This document shows positions 321 to 35,426 of a DNA stretch of 35,426 bases, piece after piece (position 1 is the stretch's first letter; each line of letters begins with the position of its first letter). The translations under genes were made by a program, and so were the position numbers. This DNA is from Perkinsus chesapeaki ATCC PRA-425 (Eukaryota > Protista > Perkinsozoa). The stretch is taken from positions 1 through 35,426 of the forward strand of contig JAAPAO010000370.1 of NCBI GenBank assembly GCA_013115145.1, given 5' to 3'. The notes under the pieces are model-generated. The model was not told the origin of the DNA. It searched no databases and saw nothing but the letters and a program-made list of their open reading frames with translations.

Positions 321-3300
321 TCACCTCGATTCGTCCCTGAGGACTGTGCCTGTGAAGGGCCTCTCGCCCGCATCTTGGGATTCCTTCAATGCGTTCTGCA
401 GAGCTGTAATCCTTTCCAGACCAATAAGGCCTCTCCAATGGGAGTATTTATCACCTAAAGTGATACTGAACCTTTTATGTGATCCTAACTTACTGTGATC
501 ACTGAAGGCTTCACACTTCACCAGAGAGAGAAAGCGTTCCAACATGCTCGAGGCGAATGCGTGGTCTAGAAGTGAAAAAACAAATGCAGGAGTTCTGACA
601 GGTGATTCCGTAATATTCTGAGGCTCAACTGTTGGGTGACTTTGGTTAGACCAGAGAAGCATAGAGGAACATTAAGCGTTGCTGAACCTGACGTTCCTCC
701 CGGAGGAATCCTCCGTATCACTAGTAACATATTTCCTATAAAATTTTCTACTCTATCCGTCCCGAATCCATGGGTCAGCCGAACTAACCGGATAAATTCG
801 CGCACTCGTCAACCATCGCTTCCCACAGGTACACCGGCACAATGCCCCCTCCACCGTTCTTCTCGCTTCCTGACAGCAGAAAATGCATGCTTCAAGCAAA
901 GATTCTCTCACTATGCCGAAGGTGCCCAAGTAGCTCATCGACACTACTCGAGTCCGAGGACGCCAATATGGATCGCCACAAATGGAGGAGGAACAGAGAC
1001 CACCCATGGACCTAAATCGGTGATGCAATCGGAGCCTTCCAGGGATCGCTCACTGGGCCACTCCTCAGCAGCCGGCCTGCAACTCGGATGCCATCGGCTA
1101 TGTCACCTCTGTCTAGAGCGCTGTTAACCTCCTGGATATCTTGCCAAATCTTATTGGGCAGGGGCTTCACCGCGCCGTACTGCTCCAGAATGGAAAGACC
1201 TAAGGAGATCGAGCACTCATAGATGCCCATTCGGGTGGCAATTTGCCATCGTTCGGTTAAATTCACCTCGCAAGTATGCCACTGGCATATTTCGGCGAGT
1301 GCATTAGACCAGACAAAATTTAGCATCACTTTTGACAGAGACCCAGTCGAAATCGATCGGGATGAAAGAATGCAATAGCTACTCAAGATAAACTCATGCG
1401 CATAGTAGAGGAACTAACACGACAGTGAACGCCCCTCAAAATAATAAAATATAATTCCATTGACTATTCCTGCAATACTAGTAGCTGTTTGGTAGTTATC
1501 GGAAGTTGGCAGGGCCATGGGCAGCCCATAGCAATTTTATATATGAACCAAGTGAAGCCAATGAAGTGGTAATACTGCTGAATAAGAAGGAGTAGCTCAT
1601 CGAGACTCACATGCCGCTGCCTTGGCCAACGTCTTGCTACTGCCTTCAGCTTTAGCCGTTAAAGACTCTGAAATGATAATGTCACTTATCAAGGAGGAAA
1701 TGAACTACTCTTCTCCTTTCCTTCAGTCCACGTCCACCCTATCGTCGCCGAGACACCCGATAGACCCTCCCCGAAGGTGATGTGACTGTCGAGGCCAACA
1801 GAGGCAGAGTCAGCCAGTCGAGCGGCCTGCCAAACAGGATTCGGCAAAATTATCAGAGAGGAAATTAGGTATACAATCAACAAGACAAACGGGATTATTA
1901 TTGCTGATCCATGATTAATCCCAATAAAAACAGATAGATAGTCGATCTCTTATGTCTAATGAACTGCAAGATGAAAACAATAAATAGAAACGATTTACGA
2001 AGGATGATTCAAGTGATGAACTATAAAAAATTCAGATTAGAGATTAGAAAAGAGTTTATTGCGAAACTTACAATATAATATTATTATTGATAAACGATGT
2101 GCACTAACAACAATACCTATCAGTTAGTCATGACACGACCGATCGATATAGTCCGCTACTTCGGGTTTCCGTTGAAGTGTAGGCTTGATCCAAGCCGCTT
2201 GAAACCTCACCTCACTGACTGTCTGTGATAGGCATAACGCTTGTGGAGCGATCGAAAAGTGTTTTGTCGCCTCGTGCCCGCCTTAATACTCCCAACACAG
2301 ATAATCCCCGGGAGCAGACACCATTCAAGTGTTCCAGAATAAACCCCTATCCGGCTCACCAATCGGCTATAGGCCATCATCACACCATTCGCTTGGCCCA
2401 TGCTCAACACCACACCACCTTCCGATGCCACTACGGCGGCGGAGCCCTCATCCGGCGAAGCGACCTGCCAAAATTGTTCGAACAATCGGTTAGGACCCCT
2501 CTATCTTGCCTGGTTATCTCCTGCTTGAGTGCCTGTGACTGTTCGGTAAATATCCTCCATAGCTCTTAATTCCGCCTCCTCTTGAGACTCGCCAAGGCCT
2601 GAGTAGATTACGGTAATCTTCTGTATCCAAGGCTACACTTGGCTGCGCAACAGTGGCAGCAATAGAAGCAAAAGGGTAAGGGAGCAGTTCTCCAGCGTTC
2701 GACGGCGATACTTTACCAGCTCGTGAGCAGAAAGATGAACATCAGATGTTCCCACATAGGTTTGCATTCACATTGATATCAGTAATACCAACTTGGTGAG
2801 CACTTCAACGTATTAGATTGTACGAAATCACCATCAGAATTTCTGTTGTATATATTTCGGACAAGGATTACTTTTCTGTGAGGAGGCGAGGTGACTCCTC
2901 GATCGGGGCGAGCGGAGGTATCTCGACACTTTCTCGAACCCTAGGAGGCTTTATAGTATATTCCCTATCAAGCTTCCCGCCATATCTCTACATTCTGGGG
3001 GAGAAGCTAGTTCGGGAGCTACAGACGCCCAGAAGCGCTATATACGAAATATCCGTATGTAAATAGGACGCAACGGAGCAACACTGTTGCTGTTCAACTG
3101 GACATATAAACAACCTCACCGGCGCCTTTCCAAATCTTCGTATCTTTCCCTGGGCCGATCTTCTCCCAGACAATTTCGCATCGGTGCCCCTTGCCACCGG
3201 ATTGCAATACGTAGCTCGACCTGGACCGAGCTCCCACGGCCTTCTCGAGGTCCATGCACATCTTCTTCCATAGCCAGAACATAGTAGACTGGTCATAGGG

Positions 3301-4421
3301 GAGATGTTGGATAATCTAAAGGCATTACTTCGGAGGATATCAGATCCATCTTGCCAGCTGAAATTATAATGGGAAGATGCGCAGGGATTGGTGAATATTA
3401 TATGTAGAATAGATTATTAGTACTAACAGTATATATCCACTATTACAGCGGTTAGGAACCTCTGTTAGATGGTCGCAAGTTCGATCCACAGGCCTGTCGT
3501 TTTTCTGCGGAAAGATATTTTTTGGCCCGCAAACCTTCAAGGTACAATCAGAAGCCACTTTTCGTATTTTTCCTGGTATCCCCAGTGTAAGAGCTATCGT
3601 GAGAGCTAATAGTGCATAGCACTTGATCATAACCCCTCTAGATCATCGCTGGATAAGAGCTGGATAAATTGTTCCCACGCACGCACAAAGGTGACAGCAT
3701 AGTATAGGCTCCGCTCGCTCCGCAATGTCTTATTATATATTATCATCTCATAGAACGTTATTGGCCAAAGTGGCTCATATCCAAGCACGCGACCCTAGCA
3801 GTCTTCCGCTGCTCCATGCTGCTGCTCACTTTGCCAATAGCAATCCTCTTAGTTTCCTTCTTACTAGCTCCTTCGGCTTCGACCGTAACACTACAACCAC
3901 TCGGACCAAGCTGCCACGTTAGAGATGATACGTAACTTAACAAGAACAACTTCATTAAACCAACGCGCCGCAGGAACACTGGGAGAGCCTTTAATATACA
4001 GGTGTAGGCAAGTCTCCCGCGCAGGTTCGAACCCCAGGCCTGACATCTTCACTTACCCTGTCTTAGTTTGCCTGAACTTCTCACCTACCTCCTTGTACCC
4101 ATCAAGTGCCCCTTCACTGTATAGCTCATAAAGTGCCAGAAGGTTATCCTCCTTATACATATGCTCATGGTGATAGGATGGCATCGATTCCGGAGTGCCG
4201 AGCGCGGGAATCGAACCCAGGACCTTCTCCTCCCCAGATGGAACTGCTTGCCGCTCCCCCACCAGACTATTAGACAACGATTCTTCTCCTAATCGTCGAC
4301 TCGTCGGCCTCGGCCATTTCTTCTCCACTTTCTCAAACTCCGGAGCCGCCGTCATCCCCGAAAAGTATCTTCGCAGCACTCGAGCGCCGCGCATCGAGAC
4401 CCGCCCTCCTCGAACTATCAT
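321..4421 (-). CDS. Multi-exon hypothetical protein with mitochondrial-presequence-like N-terminus and dsRBD-like motifs (may be two genes)
   Basis: Overlapping ORF-track fragments from 321 to ~2700 join in phase through ~40-60 nt GT-AG introns (longer ones at ~1.4-2.2 kb) plus one GC-AG intron (2509-2465). The 5' part (4421-4057, then 3978-3830 with a short internal intron) reads MRGARVLRRYFS...NLLALYELYSEG...RWFNEVVL.LGPSGCSVTVEAEGASKKETKRIAIGK. A second similar motif, LGESQEEAELRAMEDIY, lies at ~2550-2600. The exon path between ~2700 and 3800 is not resolved. Confidence 0.6.
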
Positions 4422-11200: not shown

Positions 11201-11600
11201 TCAAAATCGGAAATATCCTTCAACATATCATTTCACAACATATACAGTTTCATAAACCACCACTGTATCAGACGAGTCGATGAGAAAGTTAAGCCGCTTA
11301 ACTTTCGCCTAACTTAGACGTAACTGGACCGATCCGAACGGTACTGACCGAGCCTCAAATATGTTCATTTAAGCGCCAAAATACCATTCATTTTTCATCT
11401 CACAATAGTCCCAATTAGTACCTCCTCGAAATCCTGTGATCCAATAGCTTTAGCGTGATCCTCTGCATCCTGTGCAGTGAAGAAAAGTTGCCCTGTCCTA
11501 TTACAGCGTAAAATCATATTATTCGTAGGGTTGTTGGTCATATTCACTTTTGATAGAAAAAACACACTGACGTCGTCCGGACCCGATAGATGACCACGCT
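5243..11600 (-). CDS. Two degenerate C2H2-like motifs + tandem UBA + coiled coil + PUB domain protein (p97/CDC48 adaptor type)
   Basis: Phase-consistent exons: ~11600-11572, 11497-11422, 10465-10349, 10183-10118, 9676-9548, 9022-8873, 8394-8275, 7782-7679, 7385-7285, 6899-6793, 6507-6391, 6214-6138, 6080-5995, 5337-5243. UBA1 is EGKGYPVVVAEKALWF...EEWIKEHENDAD. UBA2 is EGMGFPVIRAEKALYF...VQWLSEHENDAD. PUB is TCLKTLRVYLQNAHDHPTEKKYHRINKSNKAFMERVAPFKEAVDVLENCGF. Start codon not located. Confidence 0.9.
5335..5396. repeat. Short tandem duplications at the last acceptor of the PUB gene
   Basis: aacctgatatctt x2, a partial third copy, then tcttat x3. Confidence 0.7.
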
Positions 11601-11973
11601 ACATTCGCTGATGCATATAACGGCATCTCTCGATAGGTCCACGACTATTAACTATTAACGACCAATAGGAGACTGTTACATTACGAAAACAAACATATAA
11701 CGTAAAATAATAATCATCAATAATAAAAAAACCAAGATAGTCATTCGGAAAACACATAACAAAGCACCATGACTAAGTCCGTAAAACAGCGTAATATTTC
11801 AAAAATAATAATAACGCAACCACCCCACCACCCGCCTATCAGCCATTTAAAACATCAACACTTCCCAGAGCAAACTGTGCATTGCTATTCTGCGCCTCCC
11901 ATCAGCCGGGGACATCCTCCGCCGTAGGAGTGAGGAACTTAAATGGGTAAAATTTAGTCGAGCTCGCCGCTCA

Positions 11974-14900
11974 TCAACCGAGTTGGGCTTGAAGGGCTGC
12001 CAGCTGATCCGCTTCCTCCTGGGTAAGTCCATCTGAAATACAGCAATTCAGCGTATTCTCTACAGCTTCCTGGTTAAGCTCAGCGGGTAGGTTACAAGTT
12101 ATACTTATAATCGTATGAGTTCAGTTTCAGTCATATCCGAGTCATTTAACAATACCAAAACAAGCAATGAAACGCACCGCACACAACCGACTATACTAAA
12201 CAGTCGGTTACTCATTTCACAGATGCCCGATGGTTATCTCGGCCAGCACGATGAGTTGCAATACGAAATGCATTCCTTTAACTCCATAAAATAATGATCG
12301 CATCCATCCAAAATTGATATCAGCAATCGGAATTGATATGCACAATCTGACCTGGCAGGGTTCATAATTTATCTGAAAGCCCTTGCCGGAATGAATTCCT
12401 CTACGAGGACCTCCTGGCATCGATTATCTAGTTACTCTTGAACCACCCTTGCCCAGTAGTACTGGGCCAGTACTACTTGTTTCCGGTGCAGCAGCAACCG
12501 TGCTAGCATTCGAGTCTCCTCCAGCGCTAACTTTCGGTGCTTTAACAGCTTGTGGTGCTGCTGGTACTTGGGCATTTGGCTGGGTAACCACGCCGCCAGT
12601 TGGAGCAGAGACTGCCTGAAATATACAGAATTGGGAAATCTATCACAAAAATCGGTATGATTACGGTAGGAAAAATAAGCAGCGACTGCGGGGGAAGAAA
12701 CAGAAAAGTCGATAAAAAAAAGAATGCAGAAATATGCAATACGGTGAGCGAGCAAGGCGATAGAAAGGATGTGTTTTATTACGTCCACCATTTTCTTGTC
12801 CAATTCTTCCGCTTCGATCTGGTCAAGCTCATTAAGCAGCTCGTCATCATCCATGATCTGATTGCCTGAAGATAGAACCTGAAAGAAATAAATGTTGGTG
12901 GAGAAAGAGAAACTCTCAAGGAGATTTCGCTACACAATCCCGATTATTAAACAGTTTATTCTCTCACGACTAGCGAGCTCGGTGGATAAATGTTCCATCG
13001 TTGCATACCAGTCTAATAAAATATTACTACAACGAGGTCGCAAAAGAGCTTTAAGATAATCTACCGAACAGAATGCCCACACGAGTTCGGAAAGCCATTC
13101 CGGCAACTCAGAGCTCTGACAGAGGGTGGAGTATATACACATTTATCAACATACACAGTAATTTTATACACATNNNNNNNNNNNNNNNNNNNNNNNNNNN
13201 NNNNNNNNNNNNNNNNNNNNNNNNNNNNNNNNNNNNNNNNNNNNNNNNNNNNNNNNNNNNNNNNNNNNNNNNTTTATCAACATACACAGTTATTTTATAC
13301 ACATTTATCAACATACACAGTTATTTTATACACATTTATCAACATACACAGTTATTTTATACACATTTATCAACATAAATAATATACAAGCCAATAGGAA
13401 TACCCACTAGATATGTAAATAAAAGTAAGTACCCAGTGAAAATAGACATATAAATTTGGCGTATTAAACCTGTCTACGGCGCGAGATGAGCCATATCTGG
13501 TAATTGGTATATCCAATTGGAACACCCTGTATGCCATAAGCCCATCGACTATATCACATAACCACTCGCTCTGTCCAGTCACCCGATGAATCTTTGCCCA
13601 TCCAACAGTAGAAGTTAATCGTGGAAACTTAACACCGCATTACACAATCAGATAGGCGTACTCGAATTTAACATTCCAAGCCGCCTCGGAGAGCCTTCTA
13701 CTCTGCGCCCCAAATATGGCCCTATCTCTCCCGAGCTCCATCTCCCGGTCGCAATATAAGCTTTTCCTATTCCAGATATCCGCCCATTTCATTTTTACCT
13801 GTGAGACTTCGTTCTGGAGATCCTGCTGCTCAGCCATATCATCCATCAGCTCGTCAATCTGACAGAGGATAATGCATTTACATTCTTATCAGTGAAAATT
13901 TTCATCACAATGTTACGTAACGAAATTGTCTAGTATAGTCTATCCAACATGCATAGTAGTAGTATTTTCCAGAATATAACAAGACGTGCTTTAGTAAGCA
14001 TATATCTACGAATATAAAGTATAAATATAAATATATAAGCATGCTATATCACTAAGTTTTCTTGCTTCTTATACCAAGTGCATCAGCAGCAGCAGCACCA
14101 TTCAAACAAGTGGAACTATCAGTAATTTCTGAACACGAAGATTGCTACTCTCAGACGCATTATGGTAAGCCTCCAATCCGCGACAATCAACGATATTCTC
14201 AATCACAACCCGGCGACGGCGAGTTACTGACGAGTTCTCCACCGTACTTCCCCCACTCTCTTCTCTATTACATTATCAATATTGAGTTGTTGGTTCATCT
14301 GTTTCTGTGCCGACACTCCCTGTGCCAGAGCCTGCACGGCAACCGCAGTAGTCTGACTGCTTTCAAGGGACAGAATCTGCTGCTCCAAAGTCATACCTAA
14401 TAACAGGTATACTACCTTTACAAATGATGCAGCAGATTGGGTCGATATGAATATCTATAATACTATATACAGATATGATATGTGTATTACACCGTATTGT
14501 AATGTTATTCCACCGAGCTGCAATAACTCACGTAAGCACCTCCACACTTGTATCACAATACATATCGCATCATAGCCTCACGGAGAGGCATTCCTCTACA
14601 GCAAACAATTGCTACCAACGCGGAGGGCAATACAAATTTCAACAAGAAATATACGCCTATAGGAAAAATAAAATCGAATACATACCCCTGGGAACTTCAG
14701 AAGTACAACCCTATCGAATAGACAATCAATAACAGCATCCACCTTACGCGAATTCATTAAAGTTTGCAACTCGGCCTCGTACAGCTTCTTCCTCTTAAGC
14801 GCCATCAGTGCCCCACGCTTATCCTTGGCGGCTGCCCTGGTTCCTGGAACAAATATTCTACAACCGGAAAGACCAGACAAGTTTAACTCGAGGCTCACGA

Positions 14901-15605
14901 AAGGAATGAACGCACACGTTTCAACTAGGTTGCTTGGTTATTTTACCCGATATGAGCTTCTCTGCCACCTGCGCTAATTTCGTTTTTGAAACTTCGAGAT
15001 GCTCCCGTAGGATTTGATACAAGAAATATACCAGAAAATTCCCCTATCGGCTAGCTAACAAATCATCACATTATCAAGCAGAATCCAATGGCCTCATGAA
15101 AAGTCGCGAATAGTTCACGGAACCCTTCTTTTTATTGAAGACATTTCGGAAGACATTATCAACCTAAATTTGTCTGGAAGTTTCCTTCTGTGTTCTCTAT
15201 ATGACTGGCGGTCAATGAACTAACTGCCTTTAGAATAGTGCACAATGCACAGTGAATTATTATAATCCATTTCTGAGGTTTCGGGCACTCATTAGAAATT
15301 AAGCCCACTGTAACTCATAGGCGTTCGTACAATATTTTTGGGTAAAATAACAATGTGTTTTTAGTGATGTTCATGCATGCTATAATCCTTATATTACTGG
15401 CCTCCTGCTCCTGTATAGCCATTTTCTTCTCAATAAGCTGCTCTCGCTTTTCGAGAGTCTCAATTGCCTCTTTGTTCTTCATTATCGCATCCGGCATATT
15501 CTGATAGAAAAAGCGTAAAATCAACAGATGTCGAGCAATGATAACCTGTTGAGGCGGGGGAGCCTGCTTTTGCTCCTTCTTCTTTGAACCGAAGAAAAGA
15601 CGCAT
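11974..15605 (-). CDS. SNF7: ESCRT-III core subunit Snf7/Vps32 (CHMP4 family), 8 exons, ~245 aa
   Basis: Exons 15605-15546, 15500-15398, 14843-14748, 14396-14272, 13858-13799, 12878-12783, 12615-12477, 12032-11974 total 738 nt in frame. Hallmarks: AIETLEKREQLIEKK, DKRGALMALKRKKLYEAELQTL, MTLEQQILSLES, IDELMDDMAEQQD, DDDELLNELDQIE, C-terminal EEADQLAALQAQLG. Confidence 0.95.
12452..12473. repeat. 22-bp footprint-type motif (T=cccagtac) inside SNF7 intron 7
   Basis: cccagta|gtactggg|ccagtac. Confidence 0.85.
13134..13377. repeat. 31-bp AT-rich minisatellite in SNF7 intron 5, spanning an assembly gap
   Basis: Unit tttatcaacatacacagttattttatacaca with period 31 (13273, 13304, 13335); N run at 13174-13272. 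Confidence 0.95.
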
Positions 15606-15979
15606 TGTGGATTGTACAAAAATAGGATAAACCCTAAATATTAAATAATGATATTTATACGGTGTCCCTTATTATTAATGAACAACAATGCACAGAGCAC
15701 ATAAAACAAAGAGGCTGTACCTTATACTAACGAGGAGGATACTGCCTTTTGTCGGTGGGGGCTTGTCGAGCCATAACTTGTCCGTCTTGCTAATCCTTAG
15801 GTTTCCTCAACGGGGTATCCCCAGCCGCCTTGGCCAGCTAGCTACTTCTATAGGCTAATAATATCCAGTGAGTCGTTAGAACTTACTAGTTACCTCTCGT
15901 ACACAACTAATCGAGTCTAAGCCTTACCCTCTGATTCAACCTCATTTCGTATCTCAGTTTCTCTATTTTCCTCGTCCCC

Positions 15980-17089
15980 ATGTCAGGCTCCACAGAGTCT
16001 TTGGCTTCATCAACCTCCACTAAGCCGTCCAGTCCCTCTTCCTTGAAGCGCTTCAGCACAAAGGTCTCCTACTGGATCAATAACATGCCCTTCTGGCCCC
16101 TCATGATCGTCTTTGTTGCCTCTGCTATCATGCAGAACCTCTGCGAAGATCAGATCCGCAACCACGGCGGTGGCGGCAAGAAAACCGTCCATCTGTTGAC
16201 CTTCGCCGCCAACGCTCTTGGTAATGTTCTCGTCGTATTCTTGCCCGCTTCGAAGCCCCTATGGAAATGCGATTGGAAGCGCGCTGCCATTCCCTCTGCT
16301 GTAGATATTGTATCACAAGTTCTGCTCCAGTTTGGTATCGTCCTGGCTGGTGCACAGATCTACACTATGTTATATAACTCATGTATTGTTTGGACGGTCG
16401 TTCTGTCTTTCATCTTCTTAAAGCAACGTTTCTCCATCTGGCAGATCCTTGCTATCGTAGTGGTGATTGCTGGTGTTGCGATGAAGTCCTTTGTGAACTC
16501 AGTTGACGGGTCGCATCAGTTGATAGTCGGTACCATACTTATCCTTTGCGGTTGCTTCATGCATTCCCTTACCAACATCATCAACGAGTACTACATCAAG
16601 AAGTACGACTTTCCTCCGACTCGCCTTTGCGGTCTCATCGGCATCTACTCTATTATCGTTTATACTTTCTATTTCATCGGTTGGAATTCCTGGAGGATTC
16701 AAGACCAAATCGTCGACGAGATTGAAGAGGCCGGTTCCGACGTCGGGACTGTGATGGGATGGTACGTCCTGTTCATTCTGTGCAATTTCCTTCATGCCAC
16801 TTGTTTCTTCCTTCTACTTAATCGTATTGGTAATGTCGGCACTGCGATTGCCAAAGGCCTCAAGACCGGTATTTATATCTTCCTTGCCCATTTCATGTAT
16901 TGTTCCCATATTGAAAAATATTGTCTCTTTCCACTTGACCGTTGGCAGAGAGACATCACTCTTGCATCGGCGCTTATGTCTATTTTCGGTGTTGTCGCCT
17001 ACGGTTTTGCCACTAAGAAATATAACGAGAAAAAAGCGAGAAAAGCCGCTGAAGAAGCTAAGTGTCGTGATGAGGCTACTTCCGGTTAG
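15980..17089 (+). CDS. Intronless DMT-superfamily transporter (EamA/SLC35 nucleotide-sugar-transporter-like), 369 aa
   Basis: About 10 hydrophobic segments. PSAVDIVSQVLLQFGIVLAGAQIYTMLYNSCIVWTVVLSFIFLKQRFSIWQILAIVVVIAGV matches the SLC35/EamA first-repeat pattern. Basic C-terminal tail. Confidence 0.88.
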   Translation: MSGSTESLASSTSTKPSSPSSLKRFSTKVSYWINNMPFWPLMIVFVASAIMQNLCEDQIRNHGGGGKKTVHLLTFAANALGNVLVVFLPASKPLWKCDWKRAAIPSAVDIVSQVLLQFGIVLAGAQIYTMLYNSCIVWTVVLSFIFLKQRFSIWQILAIVVVIAGVAMKSFVNSVDGSHQLIVGTILILCGCFMHSLTNIINEYYIKKYDFPPTRLCGLIGIYSIIVYTFYFIGWNSWRIQDQIVDEIEEAGSDVGTVMGWYVLFILCNFLHATCFFLLLNRIGNVGTAIAKGLKTGIYIFLAHFMYCSHIEKYCLFPLDRWQRDITLASALMSIFGVVAYGFATKKYNEKKARKAAEEAKCRDEATSG

Positions 17090-17765
17090 TTTAATAAATC
17101 AACTTCTGGACTTCATTATACACAGAAAATGATTCCAGAAGCTGTTGGCTGGATATGCATTATTTCCCTAGTAATGTGACTCCGGTTCTGGTTTATTAAG
17201 CAACTCTACTAGCCACTTTAGGTTATTTATTTATAGTAACGAGCCTATCGTTGAGGCCACGTGTCTTGACGATTCTACTCGGCTCCTTGAGTATTATTCT
17301 ATGAAATCGCCATCTAATGGTTGTTTGACTGTATATAAGCACTGTTGGTTGCTCATACCGCCGTAGCATTGGTGAATTGTTTCCCAACTAGTTACTAATA
17401 ACAGATGTTGCCTTGAGTACCTTTTGATAAATATTTTATTATATCATAAAGTCAATAAAGTCTGACATATTTTTTGCAGTCTGTAATATGGGATCCATCT
17501 GATGGATGAATAACTTCCTAGTTGATACATGCATGTCTTTCAGCTGAGAGTATTTCGTTGGCGCATCCCCATCCTTGGCTTTTTTCTACATTGGTAGGAG
17601 AAAATATCAAAATCTCTTTACATACATTTGTATAGTTGATGCCGTATAACTTCACAGATGTGATGAGGTGGTTCTTGCAGATGTTGTTGAAGATGCGTAT
17701 TGGTCGAGCACTGCTGGTAGTTTGCGTCCCATACTGGGATATCTCTCGGGTGTGACAGTCGCACT

Positions 17766-17791
17766 GTGACTCACGCGGCGTGACTCACGCC
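17766..17791. repeat. Chained footprint-type motif (three symmetry centres 7 nt apart)
   Basis: gtga-c-tcacgc-g-gcgtga-c-tcacgcc; centres at 17770, 17777 and 17784. Confidence 0.7.
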
Positions 17792-18150
17792 GCTAGCCAG
17801 AACGTTTATTAATGTCCAAGTGACGAATGTTGAAATTCTCAATGACTTAGAGGATAGGATGTATAGACGGAGCTGGCTGTTGGTAGCAAACGGAGCAGCG
17901 GATAAACCGCCGCGCCCGATGTAGCAGTTGTTATGACCTTAGTGGAGTGGCAAGTTACCCTGTAAACTGCTGATGAACACAGGTCCCCAAAGTGAGACGA
18001 AACCTGCTCTATGGACTTAACGAGGTAGTCCGAAAGTAAGTAGTTGGGAGTGTCGAGGAAATATATTGGCCGTACTTTACCTGTCTCTAGTTTTGTAGCT
18101 GCTGCAAGTGGTTGTCACACCCCGTGACTCATGGAACATGGTCAACCAAG

Positions 18151-18172
18151 ACTGATTCAATCAGTCTGATTG
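18151..18172. repeat. 22-bp footprint-type motif (T=actgattg)
   Basis: actgatt|caatcagt|ctgattg. Confidence 0.85.
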
Positions 18173-18665
18173 GATAAACCCGTAAGGCATGAACTGTACT
18201 ACGCAGCGAAATTAACAATGTAGTCGCTGTGCTCGAATATCTGACCTAAGAAACCTAATAGAAACTGTGACATATCGTATACTAGACTTGAGACTGAGAT
18301 ACTATACTAAACTCCCCAGCGACTCTCCAATGAGGAATGACGGGCCGTCACCGACGCCATCAGTCTGACGGCTAGTTTCCCGCGCGCCCGATTGTTCCTT
18401 TCCTAGCGGCGGGTGAAAGCTGGGGCGCCCTGACGGCCACGAGTCACGAGGGGGAGTCTGCCACTGACAACGACAGCAACAACACCACTAGCCCATGTCC
18501 CCTAGCCCATTGGCCATGTCCCAAGGGACTTAGCATAGGTTATCGTTGGGTGGTACTCCCACATTGTCGAAGTTCCACCAAACCCGTTTTCTCTAAACTT
18601 TACGAAGTTAGAGTATGAACTGCTATCAGTACCTCTAGTGCCAACAGAGAGCTGTCGATAGTACT

Positions 18666-18716
18666 CATTATCTGATAATGATAATGATAATGATAATTAT
18701 CTGATAATGATTATCA
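18666..18716. repeat. Footprint-type motif (T=cattatca) with an internal GATAAT expansion
   Basis: cattatc|tgataatg ... tgataatg|attatca with (gataat)n between. Confidence 0.65.
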
Positions 18717-19287
18717 ACTCTTGCATCCAAGACTACTCGACACCGAGTTGTCTTGGAGTTGACATCCACCACTCGAAATCAAGTAATAAATCTTTTCACA
18801 GGGCAACCCTGATGTGGACGCACATTTTACCGGCCATATAGTGATGTATAATCTATATTGTAGAGCTGCAAGCAGATGTTTGACGATTGATAAGCGAGCT
18901 AAGCTCGCCGAGCTTCCCTTCATACAGTATATGAGGTGAAGAGAGTTAGTCACATTGTCTTTAAGGGGGCTTCTTCCGAGGAATCCCCCTTGTATACCTC
19001 CTTAGAACTTTGGCCTCAACTTGAGCTCGGATCTGTTGTAAGACACCTAATCCGCGAGGTCTTCCTCTTGAGTCCAAGACTACTCGAAACCGAGTTGTCT
19101 TGGAGTTGACATCCACCACTGGAAAGTAAGCAATAAATCTTTTTAACGGCCAATTCTGATGTAAACGCACATTGTAGCGGCCATTTAGTGATGTAGAATT
19201 TACATTGTAGAATTGCAAGTAGACGTTTCACGATTCATAGGCGAGCTTCCCTTCATACAGTATATGAGGTAAACAGAGTTAGTCAGT
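18716..19287 (-). mobile_element. Two tandem diverged fragments resembling the N-terminal reverse transcriptase region of a BEL/Pao-like LTR retrotransposon
   Basis: Direct repeat of ~230 bp (~18720-18958 vs ~19072-19287). Translations AYFPVVDVNSKTTRFRVVLDSR and IT*FRVVDVNSKTTRCRVVLDAR resemble the BEL/Pao motif YLPHHPVxKxxSxTTKxRVVFDAS. One copy has an in-frame stop. Confidence 0.5.
18894..18915. repeat. 22-bp footprint-type motif (T=gcgagctt); empty site at 19241-19248 in the paralogous copy
   Basis: gcgagct|aagctcgc|cgagctt here, versus plain gcgagctt followed by the same cccttcatacagtatatgagg in copy 2. Confidence 0.92.
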
Positions 19288-19411
19288 TGTAGAGTTACTC
19301 TACTAGAGTAGCTGCAGCAGCTACTCTAGTAGAGTAACTCTACAGTAACTCGGGATGCTACCGAGTAGCAGCTAAGCTGCTACTCGGTAGCATCCCGTCG
19401 GGATGATCCCG
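19288..19411. repeat. Cluster of perfect fold-back palindromes with 1-nt centres
   Basis: 28-bp arms (19288-19344, centre 19316), 23-bp arms (19351-19397, centre 19374), then 7- and 6-bp arms (centres 19398, 19405). Contains the 22-bp motif gtagagt|tactctac|tagagta (19289-19310) and its mirror (19322-19343). Confidence 0.95.
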
Positions 19412-19638
19412 GGGAACATATACCTATTATGCTAGGGAACAAGACTCTAAAAATTAGCGATTGGCTCAGACAGTTAAAGATAAATTGTTAAACTGTCTGA
19501 CTGTCGATCAAGACAAGTTTAACTTCAACTACTAAAGTTAATTACCCTTATTTGTGTTTATCAATATGACCCTGCTAATGGTTCCTCCGAGAACCCGGTA
19601 GGTCGCCTCAGGTGCTCTACCGGCGCCTTGGTATGTAT

Positions 19639-19667
19639 ATGTTAAGGGTACTACTGACCCTTAACAT
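19639..19667. repeat. 11-bp stem, 7-nt loop inverted repeat
   Basis: atgttaagggt-actactg-acccttaacat. Confidence 0.8.
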
Positions 19668-20073
19668 GTTTCGAGTCTTGCACTGTATTGACATGGATAC
19701 CTGAACCGGAATCCGAAATACTCCTCAACTTGTTCGGGCTTCAGATTTGTGGTTTCCTCCCGCTGCAGGAGTCCCGCACTCCCGTGTTCGTTGGGATTTT
19801 ACATAAGGCAAGATGCTCTGAACTGGAGTCGCAACTGAGCTCGAGGAGCGTCGGACTATAAACTAAAAATCAGCAAACAACACGCACATCGTATGACTCC
19901 GAGATGTTAACTTGACGAATTAAACTCGTACAGGACACGGAATTTTGTGAGGTTCAGTAGGCCAATTTCATGCATCGCCCAGCACTACAGCGATAGTGAT
20001 CGCTGGATGGGACAATGCTGACACAATTATTCTGGTGTTTTAAATCAAAACTGGAGGTCAGCAAGGATCCGTC

Positions 20074-20095
20074 TATCCTAGTAGGATAATCCTAC
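20074..20095. repeat. 22-bp footprint-type motif (T=tatcctac)
   Basis: tatccta|gtaggata|atcctac. Confidence 0.85.
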
Positions 20096-20191
20096 ACATT
20101 CTGTTATTCATTGTCCACCCTCTCATCTATTGCATATGTCTCGCTAGGGGAGTAAGGTGGTAAGTCTTCTACTGTTGAAAAAGAAATCTTG

Positions 20192-20213
20192 TCTCGATGA
20201 TCGAGACTCGATC
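20192..20213. repeat. 22-bp footprint-type motif (T=tctcgatc)
   Basis: tctcgat|gatcgaga|ctcgatc. Confidence 0.85.
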
Positions 20214-20868
20214 AGTTTTTGCCTAATATTTGCTATTATGAGCGGAGAACAAGCAAGAATTCAAGGCCGCCCTCATTTAGGTGGCAAACAGCTCAACCTA
20301 GTCATCGTTCTCGAATTGGACCCATCACGGACAATGATGGCATGTAGCCTTGAAGCATAATAACAAGAACCTTAGAGGTTGTGTGATAAGGAGACATCCA
20401 CTCCGAACCCGATTCATGCTCTATATGCGATTGCACCGATTCGTATGTATAACTGATTGACGAATGTGCTAAGTTACCGTTTGTACACAGGCGACGGTTA
20501 AGTACATATCACAGGGAGCTCCCCGGTGTCGATCATCTTATCGCATAACTTTGACCTACGGAGTCTGTAGTAAAGACCGTAGGCTACGGCAACGGTTTCG
20601 GTATAGTATTTGAAATACTGTATTCCAGCTAGCAATGTTGTGCCAACATTGTTATGACTCACACCACTCAGGTTCACCAGCTCCCTGGACTAAACGCATC
20701 GGCGATAGAGTAATAACAAACTGGACTAATAAAATGGAGGTCCAATTCCTGCCTGTGAAGCCTCTTGACTGCTAATAAGGCTCTGGCAGGTACAGTGCTT
20801 GAGCCCGAAACCTCAACTATGACTTAACTCCTAATAGAAATGTACAGGTCGCATTGCGATGATACCAG

Positions 20869-20890
20869 CCATCACCGTGATGGCATCACG
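20869..20890. repeat. 22-bp footprint-type motif (T=ccatcacg)
   Basis: ccatcac|cgtgatgg|catcacg. Confidence 0.85.
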
Positions 20891-20911
20891 GTAAAAACCT
20901 TAATGGGTCGT

Positions 20912-21364
20912 TCATATTTCGCGATATTCGTCATATTCTCCGTCTGCTCTGGGGATCCTCAGGAGCTTGTAGTTATCCTTGATAACGATTTTCTTCATCA
21001 ACTTCGAGTCGTAATAACCATCGGAGTCGGCAATCAGCGAACTGCACCCACTATGTAGTTCGATATAGACTTCCGGTAGCTTTTGTGTGGCCGTGTAGCT
21101 GCACTCGTAAGTCTTATTAGGCAGAATGGAATGAATTGCTCTGTACAATTTAACAAGGGATCCCAACGTCTTGGTGAAGCGTACGGCGTGAACCAATCGA
21201 GACCGTAGATTAATGAACGCCGCCGAGAATGGATGGAGTACCCTATTGCTTGCAGTAGATATAATTTGATACGCAGATACATTAGGAGCGTGCGCGAACG
21301 AGTCGCCGTTGATCCCACCAATAAGCAAGAGCAACAAGTATAGCAGAGGTACGATGAGTGCCAT
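20912..21364 (-). CDS. Putative secreted protein, 150 aa, unknown family
   Basis: Signal-peptide-like start MALIVPLLYLLLLLIGGING/DS and an intact ATG-stop frame. Parts of its 5' region are duplicated nearby. Confidence 0.55.
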   Translation of the reverse strand: MALIVPLLYLLLLLIGGINGDSFAHAPNVSAYQIISTASNRVLHPFSAAFINLRSRLVHAVRFTKTLGSLVKLYRAIHSILPNKTYECSYTATQKLPEVYIELHSGCSSLIADSDGYYDSKLMKKIVIKDNYKLLRIPRADGEYDEYREI

Positions 21365-21606
21365 TCAGGGATACCCTACACAAAATAGTGTTAGCGACTC
21401 CTGTTTATTCGGATTCAAGAACTATCTTCAATTTAAAGATAGTGAATAGCCGTTGTCAACAGTCAATGAGTCAGTAGTGCTGACAAGTAGCTCTCGCTGG
21501 CGCTGAAACTTTGGATGTGTCAGAGCCAATGCTACCTGTGAGTAGTGAGAAACTGGAAGGTCTACTCTAATTCTTAGTGCAACATATGAGACAACGCGAG
21601 CGCTCC

Positions 21607-21628
21607 GACACGACTCGTGTCACACGAG
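21607..21628. repeat. 22-bp footprint-type motif (T=gacacgag)
   Basis: gacacga|ctcgtgtc|acacgag. Confidence 0.85.
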
Positions 21629-21841
21629 GATGATTGTGTGTACGTACCGGCCCGCGGGAATCTGATACTGAGGTGAGGATCTCAGAGGAGATGCACTGAA
21701 ATCACGAACATTCAATGAGATGGTTCGAATCTCGGATCCGAGCTTCTCAATGCTACACACTAAATATAGTAGTACTTTTGCAATGTTACTATAGTATAGT
21801 AGCACCTATTAGCAGGCGTATTACCCTTGCTGCTGGAGCAG

Positions 21842-21913
21842 TGCTCCATCTGAGAAATGCCTGGCATTTCTATCATACGAAATACGCTCAAGACTCATCT
21901 GGCGGTGGTGCAC
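21842..21913 (+). pseudogene. Possible decayed C2H2 zinc-finger fragment
   Basis: Frame reads CSI*EMPGISIIRNTLKTHLAVVH. TGA sits where the second Cys (TGC) would be, and LxxHxxxxH is retained. Spacing is 14 rather than 12. Confidence 0.3.
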
Positions 21914-22280
21914 GAGATGAGTTCACGAGACCAGCGACAGCTCGTAGGGCGATGGCATTGCCACTACGGTGTAGTGTCCCGCTTTCGCTCGAGCTCGAAT
22001 GATCAAGGCGTTCCTCTGGTGCTGTCCCCTAAGGACTTGTCGCCGTTTACCTTTATGGTAGGAGGTTCCTGTATTCCTTCTATGTGTACCCGTTTGTAGC
22101 TGTGTGCCTGCTATATTGTATGTAAATCGATTACGTTCGGCCACATGTAGCTACGAGTCTTTATATCCCCTGCTGCTGTAGTCGGTCCGACCGGCTCTGT
22201 CGCAGGCGTGGCGCCTTTTGTGCGAATTAGATGAGTGCGAACTCGTACGGTGTGAGTGGCAAAGAAAGGATTCGCCGGAA

Positions 22281-29800: not shown

Positions 29801-32800
29801 TGTTCTCCCTTCTCAGAGCAGGCCTAGTATATAGCATGCTATGTGTTTGTCTTTTGCCAGGTTTTGGGCGGCTGGAGCGCGGAAGGCGATCCTTTGAACG
29901 ACGTTTGGTTGTCAACTGATGGAGGCAAACGATTCGAATGTAGGTGCGATTAGACGGAAATTAGGTATGAATATTTTCAGGTCGCGTGGAGCATGCCCCT
30001 TGGCAGCCAAGAGCAGACTTCGCCTGTGTGTTTTTGCCCTCCTATAATCGTGTGCTCGTCTATGGTGGTTACAGTGGTGGATGTAAGCCGGTATGAACGG
30101 CAATAGTTTGTCTTTAATGGGAATATTCAGGAGACCTTGCCACTTAGATGTTGCTTATAACATAATAGAAACAATAATACGTGAATAGTAACTGGCGCAA
30201 TTAATTATAGTTACTTAAATTACACTATCTTGCCTATTATGCCTACTTACCTGCCCTGGACGATAACTAAGCACGGCAATCCAAAGGGACTCTGTTCCGC
30301 GACCCCCTCCACGCATGTGAATGATTTAACGATTTATCGTGAGCTACCTACAAGTTCAACACGATCGAGGGCCCTGTTCTCCTTGTTGTAGTCGAGAATC
30401 TGAGGAAGATTCACTTTTGCATCTTGATTCGTAAAGGAAATGCGAGAGCTCCAAGTTGCTCACGAGGTTTTGAAATTCGCTTTATTCCAACTACTTTTAT
30501 AACTCGATATCGATTATTCGGTGCCACACTAAGTGGGTAGCTCTTGTTAGCGTGTTAGTATATTCGATCAGTCGGTGCCACACTAAGTGGGTAGCTCTTG
30601 TTAGCGTGTTAGTATATTCGATAAGTCGGTGCCACACTAAGTGGGTAGCTCTTGTTAGCGTGTTAGTATATTCGANNNNNNNNNNNNNNNNNNNNNNNNN
30701 NNNNNNNNNNNNNNNNNNNNNNNNNNNNNNNNNNNNNNNNNNNNNNNNNNNNNNNNNNNNNNNNNNNNNNNTGTTAGTATATTCGATTAGTCGGTGCCAC
30801 ACTAAGTGGGTAGCTCTTGTTAGCGTGTTAGTATATTCGATTAGTCGGTGCCACACTAAGTGGGTAGCTCTTGTTAGCGTGTTAGTATATTCGATTAGTC
30901 CTCTTAACGTATCCATTTGGTGATTCATCGATTCCCGTATGAGCCAGGTTTGGGCGGAATACCGCTGAAACTGCCTCAGGTCGAGCCCGAGGAGATCTTT
31001 GGCTGAGTGACGATCTTGGCGTTACGTGGACGGAACTCACCGACCGACTGCCTCCCAATGTGGGCAACCGATGGGGAGCAAAATTAATGATACTGGATGA
31101 TAAAGATGAAGTGTAAGCTGCATACACAAATCGCCACGCGCCACGAAATGTGTCTTGCTGTTAGGCTACTGTGTCTGGGCTATGACCCTCAGGCTCCTTG
31201 TCGAAGCGAACTGTCCTTCACATCAGATGACGGCGGCATGACTTGGTGTAAGTGAGCTTATCATCATGAGCTGCTCATGTCTGACATCTCCGAATATTAT
31301 GGTATAGTGTCACTATCATACTGGTGGGTTTTTTATTTGATACGATCAGTGGGTGGGGAGAATTAAACAGGAAAGAATAATCTGGAAGATCGCTCATCGA
31401 ATAACTATACCTTTCAGAGATCTACTTCGCGTTTAAGACCACCAATTTTGCGAATTTTAATTAGTATCAGCCACTAGAAGTAGATCTTCGTTGGTTATTA
31501 GGGTGACAATATCTTTAAATACTCTTCCAAAGAACAAGGAAGATGGATAGTATCGTTGCCTTCATTAGTGCCTCGGGACACCATACGTTTTCCAAGGAGA
31601 GAAGACATAGAGAGCTGGGCGTCAAAATGCCCTCAGTTGGCTTTGGCTCGTAATCCTAACTCCACTCCGGCAATGGTGCTCCTCACAAGGTAGGTAGAGT
31701 GATAGTGTATATCTATCCGTATGTATATATGTATGGTATTCTTCCATTTTGGAGTATCAAAATCGAACACACTGTATTTTGCCCTTTGGCGATTGAGGGC
31801 TGCACTAAATTACACTGAGTAATGGTGCAAGACTCGGATGGAGTTACAAGTTTCCGCTCTTAGCTTACATCCACTATCACATGCATTTCATCATTCCAGA
31901 TCTGGCGACTGCGACCGTTCGTGGTCGTTTGGCAGGACGTGGCGCCGAGCCTCGCCTGGTCTTAGAAGTGACCCAGAGCTGCTCAACAGGACGATCGGAG
32001 GGAGCGCTAGAGTTGTTGCCAGCGGTAAGGGGGTTCGTTGTTATGTACTATATTTAATACACATTCATGTTCGCGTTAATATGTAACTCCTCCTCCTGTA
32101 TCTCATCCGGCGATGGCCATTCACGTGCTTGTGGTTGATCATAGTAGGTTTTCCTCAAGGACTGCCGTAGGTGGGTGTAGCGCAGATCTTCAGTGCCAGA
32201 GCGAACAAATAAAAAGGAATGAGGAATGATCATGCAGCTGTGTAAATAGCGAAAAACAAGGCACGCAAGTGAAATGCAGAGATACGCATTTTTAGCTCTT
32301 CACAGTGTGAAGAGTAAGAACAGCGTAGAAATAGAGTTTAGTCATTGACTAATAGTCAATGTGGAGTCCACAGTTGTTCTCACCGAACTAGTTTCTAGAA
32401 TCGATGGTTTTTTATTCTCACTACTTGACAACGTGTTCAATAGGTTTCGCAATGAGAAAACTCAAATGAATACTATTTAACCTAATATCAATAATGAAGA
32501 AAAGTTTGATGAAGTTCACTAGATTTTGTGAATGTAATTCCCTATGACGCGGAGTACTTAATTTCTTTATGGTTTGCGTGGCAGGTGATTCATTCAAATC
32601 TACCCTCAGGTCCCGCACGCTTGTCAATGATATCTGGTCCCAACGCCTCGGAGGTATTTGAGTCTGTTCCTGATAAATCCAGTGTTGAAGCTCAAAAAGC
32701 CCTTTTGGAGCTCATAGCCGATCGACTTCCTCAAGGAGTAGATTTCCAGAACATATTTCGCCTTCATGTGGCTGAGGCTCTACTAGGCTCTGAGCTCAGC

Positions 32801-33129: not shown

Positions 33130-35426
33130 ATGGCCGATCAAGAGGGTTTGGCCGAAACCGAAGTAACATCATCGAGCGAGAAAGAGAGCGGAGTTATTCC
33201 GGTAGAACGAACACTTGATGAGAGATGTGCAAGTAAGCAGGAACTGAGATAACGGAAGATGACCCATTTCAAACGGAGAAGATCGTAGCGAATAGAATAT
33301 ATTATAATTAATATTATTATATTGTTGGTTACCAATTAACTTTTTCGAGTGATATTAAATATTCATCATTAAATGATGATAATTGCATCGGTAGACCCTA
33401 ATAATGTCTAATAACTCAATGGAGCCTTGCCGCCTAAAGTGGTCCTCAAGGATTAAAAATCAGAAAGAAATCCTCGAGGGAGTGAAAAGAACAGTCGTGA
33501 GGAAATGAAAAACGGTAGTCATCGAGTGGAGATGTGTTTTCAGACGTGACAATAAATGCGTCACTTTTGGGGGCATTCGGTGTTTCTCTACAACTCCCTT
33601 ATATAATTCATCCACTCTGTATAATTGTTAGATGCAATGTGTATGGTATCTGTAATTATTAAGGTTGAAAATTGTTAAATAGCACTGTCATACTAACTTA
33701 ATAAGGCTTAAACAATGGATACTATCAAGTATGAAAACGGACCAGATCGTGATCTGAGGGAGCGCGTGCTCTCTTAGGGTTTCAAACCCTATATTTTACA
33801 CCAAGTATGACTCCAAAATTTTGAGTTCAAATTGGAGTCGTACACGGTGTAACGCAACCGAAGTCGGTTGGTCTAATGTAAAAAGATAATGAATTAACGA
33901 TCAACAACCATTGGGGAGACGAGACAGCGTACGCGTCTCAATAGCGCTCGTCATTGCATACAATTTATATGTAAAGCGGTATGCTAGAGCTAAATGCAAA
34001 GGTCTTACTACTACAGATAATACTTGATAGTCGTAGTCGCTCGCTAGTCGTAAACCATGGAGGAGAGGGAGTATTGACTCATACGTATCATCTAAATTAT
34101 TATCCCTTTTTTCTATCAGTTTCTCTCTTCAATCATCTCCGTATATTAGCCTATGAGCTGGCTCTTAGTGTGTCATCCAACAATCAAGACATGGAGGAGG
34201 TTGCCACCAGTTTTATAAATGCGAACACTCAGGCGGCTCTTGCGAAGTGTCTCGTCAATTTCTGGTTCATTTGCGGCTCACAGTTCCACGAGTTCTGGGA
34301 TGAGGTGAGCTCCAAAGATGTCCAACAATTGTGATTTCAGTTTTGGAATATCCTTTACCCTCTTTCAATCTCATCTGGAATTTGAGATAGAAAGTACAAT
34401 CCACAATACTGGAACGCACAAAAATGGACGGAAATTTCGCTAAACTTTGGCGAAATTTTCTTCTCCTATCAACAATGTGTAGGCGCTCACGTGCGCCTAT
34501 TCATCCTGTTATTAGTTGATTTTCTCAGGCCCAGCAACGTTCCTGGCTGAACAGACTGTATGTTTTAATACTGGGGTCCGAGGAGGGGCTTGTCTCTCTT
34601 CATAGCGGCTTCGTTATACTGCGTGATTGCATCTTCACTCTACACTGGGCAACTGACCGGAAAGCAACTGGCTGGAGCGGCGAGCAGGACCAAAGTTGGC
34701 TTTGCCGGCTGTCGGATCTGGCAGCGCCGCTGGCAGCTCGATCGAAGAGTTTGAACCAAATAATGTCACATGAGAGGCTGTTTCCTGCGATCAGTTTAAG
34801 CGAGAACACTCCGGTAGGTATCCCTTGCAATCTGCAAGGAGAAGGTGAGCTGAAAGCTAGAATTTAGTATCTATGAACGCGGCTCCCACTCTTGTGAAGT
34901 TAGCGCTTACTGAAGACTTTCGCTGAGCCCGATTTGGTGCATAGTGTGGTTCCGAATGCCGTCAGTCATGTGCGTTCTTTTTTCCAAAGGAATGGCGTCT
35001 GTGCCTGAAGTAGGGGGAGCTTCAGATCTTAGTCTTAATTTAGGACTCTTAAAGCCTCTAAGTTAAAGGGCATAACGCTACACTACAAGTGTACATTTCT
35101 CAAAAAAAGCACTTCTCGAAATATTATCAAGGCAGTTTCCTCTGTCTGGGCCGGCAAGTGCTGTTGCTTTTTCAGTCATATGCCTTGAGTGGTGGTAAAA
35201 CTCCATATCGCAACGGATATCTCCCGGGACCGATGAGTAGTTGGAGGCTCACAAAGCCCCAAAAGATAGCTGCTGGGGTCGCCATCACTGTGCCAGGTGA
35301 GCTCTCGGCCCCCCGTTTCCGTACCCAGTGTTCCACTGTATCCTTGGTATCTGATGATAAGCGGATTGAGCTTGCGAATGTAGCGGCTGTGAAATCTCCA
35401 GAGATTAAGGGAGTACCGCACGCACA
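33130..35426 (+). CDS. 5' part of a multi-exon hypothetical gene running off the window
   Basis: Exons 33130-33232 (MADQEGLAETEV...), 34150-34304 (YELALSVSSNNQDMEEVATSFINANTQAALAKCLVNFWFICGSQFHEFWDE), 34529-34557, 34606-34813 and 35176-35296 have canonical splice sites and consistent phases. An extra small exon near 33460-33515 is possible. Confidence 0.7.

Follow-up and report, generated by a model that had tools for sequence, protein, structure and literature searches.

Stereotyped 22-bp palindromic scars in Perkinsus DNA as probable excision footprints of a transposon with 8-bp target-site duplications and hairpin-capped flanks

A 35,426-nt contig of Perkinsus chesapeaki ATCC PRA-425 (JAAPAO010000370.1, assembly GCA_013115145.1), referred to in its full length as the window, carries 13 perfect copies of a stereotyped 22-bp arrangement. 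Each copy consists of the first seven bases of an 8-mer, T, followed by the reverse complement of T and then by the last seven bases of T, an order abbreviated here as T[1-7]+rc(T)+T[2-8]. These 22-mers are real, and their geometry is highly specific. They are probably the donor-site scars of an excising cut-and-paste transposon that makes 8-bp target-site duplications (TSDs), leaves hairpins on the flanking DNA, and places its first nick 1 nt into the flank. The geometry comes first below, followed by the alternative alleles and the longer scars that bear on how the 22-mers arise.

Geometry, abundance and placement of the 22-mers

Eleven copies had been listed in an initial annotation of the window, and all 11 proved exact in sequence and position. 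A full scan brought the number of perfect copies to 13, the additional two lying at 694 and 19322, and the near-perfect or chained places that had been pointed out at 17750/17770, 18666/18695 and 19391 were likewise recovered (Table 1). About 1e-4 perfect 22-mers are expected in the window, the rough chance figure given in the annotation, against the 13 observed. Decayed copies were found in the same scan (4 with one mismatch, 12 with two and 18 with three), and the block-shuffle means for 0, 1, 2 and 3 mismatches were 0, 0, 0.13 and 1.2. The two palindrome centres are c(T8) and c(T1), the complements of the last and first bases of T, in every perfect copy, and each 22-mer is able to form two alternative 7-bp hairpins.

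Alternative geometries, with T lengths of 5-12 and end offsets of 0-2, gave no matches at lengths of 7 or more except one chance match (length 7, offsets 2/1). That match aside, lengths 6, 7 and 9-12 were empty and 5-nt units lay at background; zero-offset units of the form T+rc(T)+T and units of 9-10 nt had no match in the window. A spike at a centre spacing of 7 between paired odd palindromes had been proposed as a check. The test was run on about 142 kb of Perkinsus DNA, including the window, P. olseni loci L001, L003 and L007, P. chesapeaki locus L002, and P. marinus ATCC 50983 locus L005, using odd palindromes with arms of at least 6 and no assumption about T. The spike was present, with 28 occurrences against 0.00 in shuffled sequence, and every other spacing occurred at most 4 times. 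Palindromes with one central base are enriched (30 at arm 7, against 1.6 expected), and those with 0, 2, 4 or 6 central bases are at chance level.

The annotation held the copies to be non-coding, and none of the 28 with at most two mismatches overlaps the 4.5 kb of exon-like blocks conserved across species. Site 694 lies inside an unconserved open reading frame (ORF) of 163 aa without a Pfam match. Ten of the 13 perfect scars fall within 4.6 kb (18151-22757; P ~5e-5), and this clustering, together with the avoidance of conserved exon blocks, fits local re-insertion. All of the 22-mers lie within continuous sequence, and neither of the gaps in Table 1 touches a scar. Of the copies with at most two mismatches, the closest to a gap is 12459-12480 (beside the perfect copy at 12452), with about 690 nt between its end and the gap; among the three-mismatch matches it is that at 31258, whose start is about 490 nt away.

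The series of copies with 0, 1, 2 and 3 mismatches points to true mutations of differing ages. A single substitution in the middle segment explains both mismatches in half of the two-mismatch copies, namely those at 2182, 17750, 19757, 22371, 35032 and 35048, and five of these six substitutions are transitions. In decayed copies, 6 substitutions fall in the middle segment and 4 in the flanks, against an expected 6 to 16; the excess could have arisen, for example, by deamination of single-stranded tails.

Neighbouring scars also stand in a recurrent register. Three independent pairs (17750/17770 and 19289/19309 in the window, 11973/11993 in L003) overlap by exactly 2 nt, the second copy starting 20 nt after the first and its 8-mer beginning at position 7 of the first. 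A fourth neighbouring pair, at 35032/35048 in the window, has a 6-nt overlap and thus another register. The 2-nt register may indicate that a protein guides re-insertion to a place next to a scar, or to the end of an element, that is already there.

Table 1. Scars, the paralogous empty site and assembly gaps (coordinates refer to the window unless a locus is named; T, 8-mer)
Feature	Coordinates	Strand	T	Remarks
Perfect scar	694..715	.	TTCCTCCG	Absent from the initial annotation
Perfect scar	12452..12473	.	CCCAGTAC	In Snf7-like gene; conserved exon blocks on either side, 11974-12036 and 12775-12880
Perfect scar	18151..18172	.	ACTGATTG	
Perfect scar	18894..18915	.	GCGAGCTT	Copy A of 347-nt tandem duplication
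Empty site	19241..19248	.	GCGAGCTT	Single 8-mer in paralogous copy B, 87% identical to copy A
Perfect scar	19289..19310	.	GTAGAGTA	Mirrored to 19322-19343 by neighbouring long-form event
Perfect scar	20074..20095	.	TATCCTAC	
Perfect scar	20192..20213	.	TCTCGATC	
Perfect scar	20869..20890	.	CCATCACG	
Perfect scar	21607..21628	.	GACACGAG	
Perfect scar	22673..22694	.	CTGGCATT	
Perfect scar	22757..22778	.	GTTAGAGG	
Perfect scar	32338..32359	.	TTAGTCAA	
Decayed scar pair	17750..17791	.		2 and 1 mismatches; overlap exactly 2 nt
Decayed scar	19391..19412	.		1 mismatch
Decayed scar pair	35032..35069	.		2 mismatches each; overlap 6 nt
Decayed scar	2182..2203	.		Both mismatches at one T position (single middle-segment substitution)
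Long-form scar	19288..19397	.	TAGCTGCT	T at both tips; centres 19316, 19374
Long-form scar	18665..18716	.	CATTATCA	T at both tips; centres 18673, 18709
Long-form scar	1236..1289	.	GTGGCAAA, GTGGCATA	Implied by centres 1242 and 1282; filler 26 nt
Older long-form scar	28698..28754	.	ATCTTCAC	Implied by both centres, 28703 and 28749 (8/8 match)
Long-form scar	L001, centres 20105, 20132		AGGTTGCA	
Long-form scar	L002, centres 9083, 9098			
Assembly gap	13174-13272			Inside tandem array, period 31 nt; not part of any scar
Assembly gap	30676-30771			Inside tandem array, period 54 nt; not part of any scar

Scars in other Perkinsus loci and their empty alleles

Perfect 22-mers recur in P. olseni (L001, three; L003, five; L007, one) and in P. 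marinus ATCC 50983 (two, both in L005), for a total of 24 copies in about 142 kb against roughly 5e-4 expected. The P. chesapeaki locus L002 has no perfect scar in 21 kb and holds only two one-mismatch copies and one long form. This profile suggests that activity there has been weaker, or lies further back, than in P. marinus, P. olseni or the window.

The annotation had proposed a search for 8-bp empty sites. Seven events permitted such a comparison, against another haplotype or a paralogue, and each of the seven was matched there by exactly one copy of the bare 8-mer. In the window, copies A and B of the 347-nt tandem duplication differ by exactly 14 nt at the scar (18894 versus 19241). Between P. 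olseni haplotypes, whose introns align at 85-92% identity, the empty allele of L001:16419 is a single GGGAGAGG in L003 and that of L003:11010 is a single TATGGACT in L001, each with an exact 14-nt gap. The adjacent pair L003:11973 and 11993 corresponds to GCACCGGCATGTGG in L001, with both sites empty and an exact 28-nt gap. An unlinked locus supplies a further case, the scar at L007:12274 facing a single ATCGTAAG in L008, and a longer event with centres at L001:20105 and 20132 is a 34-nt insertion for which the L003 allele has one copy of the 8-mer. Each 22-mer scar is a +14-nt change of a single 8-bp site.

No perfect scar is common to the diverged P. olseni haplotypes, which makes the process recent and probably ongoing; by our estimate, there is about one scar event per 280 substitutions between them. 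Large indels between these haplotypes were considered as filled sites and rejected, as they consist of diverged intron and unrelated indels. Cross-species alignment is limited to exons (~80%), and intron scar sites are thus not comparable between species.

Long-form scars

Longer structures were sought through the 8-mers that palindromes imply. For each odd palindrome, the 8-mer implied as a left-flank hairpin was taken as the last seven left-arm bases plus the complement of the centre, and that implied as a right-flank hairpin as the complement of the centre plus the first seven right-arm bases. Palindromes within 300 nt of each other were then paired if their implied 8-mers were equal, with one mismatch tolerated. 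Real DNA gave 36 pairs implying one 8-mer and shuffles gave 0.0. Most of the 36 are the spacing-7 scars, two are mirror images derived from an arm-28 palindrome, and six are long-form events in which odd palindromes 15-58 nt apart imply one 8-mer at both tips.

The long forms have two forward copies of the 8-mer separated by the inverted left flank and then the inverted right flank, and their fillers hold nearby direct and inverted copies. In the event at 19288..19397, a left palindrome (19288-19344, arm 28) is connected by a 6-nt junction (19345-19350) to a right palindrome (19351-19397, arm 23). Because the 28-nt arms contain the perfect scar at 19289 and its mirror image, that scar predates the 19316/19374 event, and the same 100 bp has thus been hit repeatedly. 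Locally templated GATAAT repeats make up the 20-nt filler of the 18665..18716 scar, and the filler of 28698..28754 is partly an inverted copy of the left flank.

This is the structure that would be expected if an 8-bp duplication had existed, both ends had been capped by hairpins, and the hairpins had been opened far from their tips and joined. Since the long forms have two separate 8-mers, each with its own inverted flank, they imply a prior 8-bp duplication and two hairpin-capped ends with a 1-nt offset. By our reasoning, one duplex would be unable to supply both hairpins, because the T of each strand would be needed twice, and the duplication must therefore have come first.

A model for scar formation

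The geometry, its specificity, the alternative alleles with a single 8-mer, and the two 8-mers with inverted flanks in the long forms are read directly from the DNA. From them we infer a transposon, hairpins and a repair pathway. In the proposed model, an element would insert at an 8-mer T to give T-element-T. On excision, the first nick would fall 1 nt inside the flank and the opposite strand would then be attacked, so that both flanks would end in hairpins, the left cap reading T1..T7-c(T8)-c(T7)..c(T1) and the right cap, on the bottom strand, c(T8)..c(T2)-T1-T2..T8. Host nucleases would open each hairpin at least 8 nt from its tip, and the 3′ tail so released would carry the inverted complement of the flank to which it belongs. 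The duplicated 8-mer would be the sole homology between the tails, which would anneal over all 8 nt, and flap trimming and gap filling would then yield a top strand of T[1-7]+rc(T)+T[2-8] with centres c(T8) and c(T1). Wherever the hairpins were opened, the outcome would be the same, which would account for a stereotyped 22-mer. Where annealing of the 8-mers failed, the long tails would be joined elsewhere, at times with locally templated filler, to give the long-form scars.

A hairpin-annealing scheme of this kind had been put forward in the initial annotation, and when re-derived it gives exactly the observed unit, including both centre bases. The annotation had further named the scars candidate hAT-type footprints. 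On this point the geometry agrees (spacing 7, empty sites and long forms), and a hAT element or transposase was not seen in the sequence examined; hAT membership, as judged from the geometry, is a candidate assignment and unproven.

Searches for an element, a transposase and a target preference

Terminal inverted repeats (TIRs) with TSDs were searched in all loci, with TSDs of 7-9 bp, one TSD mismatch allowed, and TIR matches of 8/8, 9/10, 10/12 or 11/12; nothing convincing emerged at any stringency. A candidate at L001:6651-8131, with 14/16 TIR matches, was rejected since its "TSD" is a near-palindrome within a 26-nt inverted repeat, and many matches in L005 were rejected as a 59-nt satellite. 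Pfam searches of the 17 window ORFs recovered only the SLC35-type transporter described below. Transposase domains were absent from these ORFs and from the gene tables of the eight loci, no whole-genome search having been made. The literature searched contains no report of hAT elements in Perkinsus or of scars of this type.

The expected number of resident elements can be estimated under assumptions of our own, namely excision at about 1e-5 per element per generation (a residence of about 1e5 generations) and about 1e-9 substitutions per site. The time for which a scar remains perfect would then exceed the residence of an element about 450-fold, and the 24 perfect scars would correspond to about 0.05 resident elements per 142 kb. 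With so few elements expected, a missing element counts for little, and its absence would be expected for a low-copy active family.

As the annotation had remarked, the 8-mers share no target consensus. A preference for nTnnnnAn is typical of many hAT elements and is not universal in the superfamily. Among the 23 8-mers, position 2 is T in 8, C in 9, A in 5 and G in 1, and position 7 is A in 8, G in 6, T in 6 and C in 3, amounting to a weak, non-significant depletion of G at position 2 and of C at position 7. Palindromes of 4 bp within T, counted by eye, are not enriched.

Several observations weigh against excision by a hAT-like transposon. No element-filled allele, TIR with an 8-bp TSD or transposase domain was found in the ~142 kb, and the nTnnnnAn preference does not appear in the 23 8-mers. 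The papers searched report Dada elements and Merlin-like sequences in P. marinus and no hAT; the Dada elements have 6-7 bp TSDs and tRNA targets, and the Merlin-related ORFs lack recognisable ends (PMC8101967). The classical short form, T[1-7]-c(T8)-c(T1)-T[2-8], is not enriched (4 against about 1.7 expected). For P. marinus, Table S1 of PMC6635534 records Ku70, Ku80, Lig4, MRE11, RAD50 and a polymerase of the POLA/POLQ group. Loss of classical non-homologous end joining was considered as a cause of the stereotypy and rejected given Ku70, Ku80 and Lig4; with these three retained in P. marinus, neither the dominance of the full-overlap product nor the lack of short footprints can be put down to such a loss. 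Finally, the recurrent exact 2-nt overlap of neighbouring scars is not predicted by a simple excision model.

Alternative explanations

The same sequence of TSD, flank hairpins and annealing could be the work of a non-hAT element, whether a MULE, a Merlin-like element, or another 8-bp-TSD or lineage-specific family. We regard this as unlikely. MULEs combine 8-10 bp TSDs with flank hairpins (PMC5499845), P. marinus has Merlin-related ORFs with an intact DDE motif, Merlin TSDs measure 8-9 bp (PMC8101967), and no hAT was seen in the sequence examined. However, T+rc(T)+T would be the product of an element without an offset, and a TSD of 9-10 bp would lengthen the unit; neither form had a single match. 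The hairpin product of the MULE Muta1 measures 43+43 nt, which we read as lacking an offset, and more than 90% of its excisions are precise (PMC5499845), whereas centres complementary to the element-adjacent base are a documented signature of Ac/Ds (PMC5873905). For Merlin, no TIRs or TSDs were found in P. marinus (PMC8101967). It is quite unlikely, in our judgement, that the scars were made without a conventional resident transposon, either by a domesticated hairpin-forming transposase or nuclease that makes 8-bp staggered breaks and resolves them or by an unrecognised class of element that inserts, leaves almost at once and returns in fixed register beside its own scars, a return hinted at by the recurrent 2-nt overlap. 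Slightly less likely again is a process that owes nothing to transposons, such as template switching during replication (forward, back over 8 nt on the other strand, and forward once more), or the action on ordinary DNA of a domesticated transposase or of a hairpin-forming host nuclease. It would agree with the failure to find a transposon; the empty alleles with a single 8-mer would also follow from direct conversion of 8 nt to 22, and the fixed 20-nt register of neighbours could reflect a periodic, processive error. Yet template switching offers no reason for a unit of exactly 8 nt with a 1-nt offset when lengths 6, 7 and 9-12 gave none, and the unrelated 8-mers provide no homology to guide the return switch. 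To make the long forms, the template would have to be switched precisely at least three times, one of them a jump ahead, whereas they follow directly from two hairpinned ends, and the inability of one duplex to yield both hairpins, as reasoned above, also argues against a process on ordinary DNA.

We attach almost no weight to an artefact of assembly, sequencing or library preparation. The window does belong to a gapped draft assembly, but the geometry recurs in the window and in five independent assemblies of three species, the haplotypes differ by clean 14-nt steps in otherwise collinear sequence, the copies form a mutational decay series, and the gaps are far from the sites. Equally little credence goes to selection for a function, be it protein binding or signalling by an RNA or DNA hairpin. 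The capacity of every 22-mer to fold into two alternative hairpins would suit such a role; against it, the sequences are unrelated and have the geometry alone in common, their presence or absence is polymorphic within species, the copies decay like neutral DNA, and none matches an Rfam family.

Genomic context

The only long ORF in the window, 15980-17089, encodes an SLC35/EamA-type transporter (Pfam), which shares 91% identity with a P. olseni protein and 68% with one from P. chesapeaki. Window DNA aligns with P. marinus and P. olseni at about 79-80% identity, in exon-sized blocks only. The scar-rich stretch at 18151-22757 lies downstream of the transporter gene, and nothing corresponding to it is present in the loci of P. 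marinus or P. olseni. Window positions 5989-15623, with Snf7-like and UBA/PUB genes, are syntenic with L001:19655-12249 and are inverted relative to the transporter in comparison with P. olseni and P. marinus. The sole non-genic block conserved with P. chesapeaki pairs 22058-22187 with L002:9003-9153 (67% over 152 nt); it is near the transporter in both, at differing orientation and distance.

A tRNA gene is truncated by the window start (1-69; Rfam, 53.9 bits; no ARAGORN call), and positions 1-70 are 100% identical to L001:116-185. An inverted pair of 53-nt tRNA-like sequences (3461-3513 and 29718-29770, 77%) received no call from Rfam at the gathering threshold or from ARAGORN. The pair could be tRNA-derived fragments, tRNA genes being the targets of Dada transposons in P. 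marinus. An ORF of 150 aa on the minus strand (20912-21364) has no Pfam match; its 5′ part and the region upstream are repeated about 1 kb away (22281-22562) in inverted and rearranged form at 87-95% identity. A 19-nt tandem repeat with a CCCTCCGGCCTATACCCTT-like unit occupies 29575-29671 in at least five copies. A 59-nt repeat specific to P. marinus is found at L005:10558-11500, 12661-12710, 14233-14284 and 15799-15915 and at L006:4600-4664. Its 16-copy array abuts an assembly gap in an intron of the Snf7 gene, and introns nearby hold solo and inverted copies. The loci of the other species lack the repeat, and neither a TSD nor a TIR is evident.

Implications

If the scars are excision footprints, Perkinsus genomes would hold a dense and countable record of transposon excisions, with a perfect scar roughly every 6 kb here. 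Footprints of excision usually vary too much to be picked out of genome sequence, and a stereotyped product would make transposition rate, local hopping and target choice measurable from sequence. The same reading would imply an unusual handling of hairpin-capped breaks, which would be opened far from the tip and annealed over the full 8-mer despite the presence of Ku and Lig4. Were the scars instead to arise without a transposon or from an unrecognised element, they would represent an endogenous, enzyme-defined mutational process by which palindromic insertions of +14 nt are written throughout a eukaryotic genome. For an economically important shellfish parasite, the scars also provide a simple kind of polymorphic marker, and each of them adds two overlapping, hairpin-prone palindromes to introns or intergenic DNA.

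Comparison with known systems

The coding joints of V(D)J recombination, made by RAG, and Transib excision resemble the Perkinsus scars in that hairpin-capped flanks are opened off-centre to give P nucleotides and are then processed by end joining. They differ in their 5-bp TSDs, 5-nt units being at background in Perkinsus. RAG and Transib hairpins form without a 1-nt offset and yield even-centred palindromes, and palindromes without a central base are at chance in Perkinsus.

Elements of the hAT, Transib and MULE groups all form hairpins on their flanks, and most hAT TSDs measure 8 bp (PMC5499845). The MULEs Muta1 and Os3378 share with the Perkinsus scars flank hairpins, TSDs of 8-10 bp and a repair that depends on TSD homology; unlike them, they are mostly repaired precisely, with removal of the element and one TSD copy (PMC5499845). 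The zero-offset and 9-10 nt units that a MULE excision footprint would lead one to look for had no match. Polymerase-theta or microhomology end joining and template-switch scars resemble the present ones in their 6-20 bp microhomology joints and local direct or inverted templated fillers (PMC6635534), but vary in length and position and lack a fixed 7+8+7 unit with single-base centres. Short template-switch mutations are of variable length and involve no target duplication, whereas here the length is fixed at 8 and the duplicated 8-mer is found with both flanks inverted.

The closest likeness is to the hAT element Ac/Ds as studied in plants, Saccharomyces cerevisiae and Candida albicans, with its 8-bp TSD, complement-centred P-nucleotide palindromes, possible long arms, and microhomology (PMC5873905). 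The palindromic insertions in Ac/Ds footprints have the complement of the element-adjacent base as their centre; their arms can reach 20 nt in yeast, and 85-100% of joints show microhomology (PMC5873905). In Perkinsus, the unit is exactly 8 nt and the long forms have two 8-mers, so that an 8-bp TSD is deduced from scars rather than seen around an element; the centres are c(T8) and c(T1), and only single-centre palindromes are enriched. Microhomology at the joint takes the form of the maximal 8-nt overlap in the dominant product (22 perfect copies in 113 kb), and other tail-length combinations, comprising the classical and intermediate footprints, are at chance. Experimental Ac/Ds footprints, by contrast, are short and heterogeneous, with 28 types among 128 events in C. 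albicans (PMC5873905), and the footprints of TcBuster in human cells are small indels (PMC3499496). In Perkinsus one product dominates, in which both tails would have reached at least 8 nt and overlapped in full, and the classical 16-mer is not enriched. The scars were also read from genomes, at about one per 6 kb, and not from a reporter, and the Perkinsus element is a putative one. What would be new here is a hAT-type footprint that appears to be resolved nearly always into one full-length product, abundant enough for genome-wide reading.

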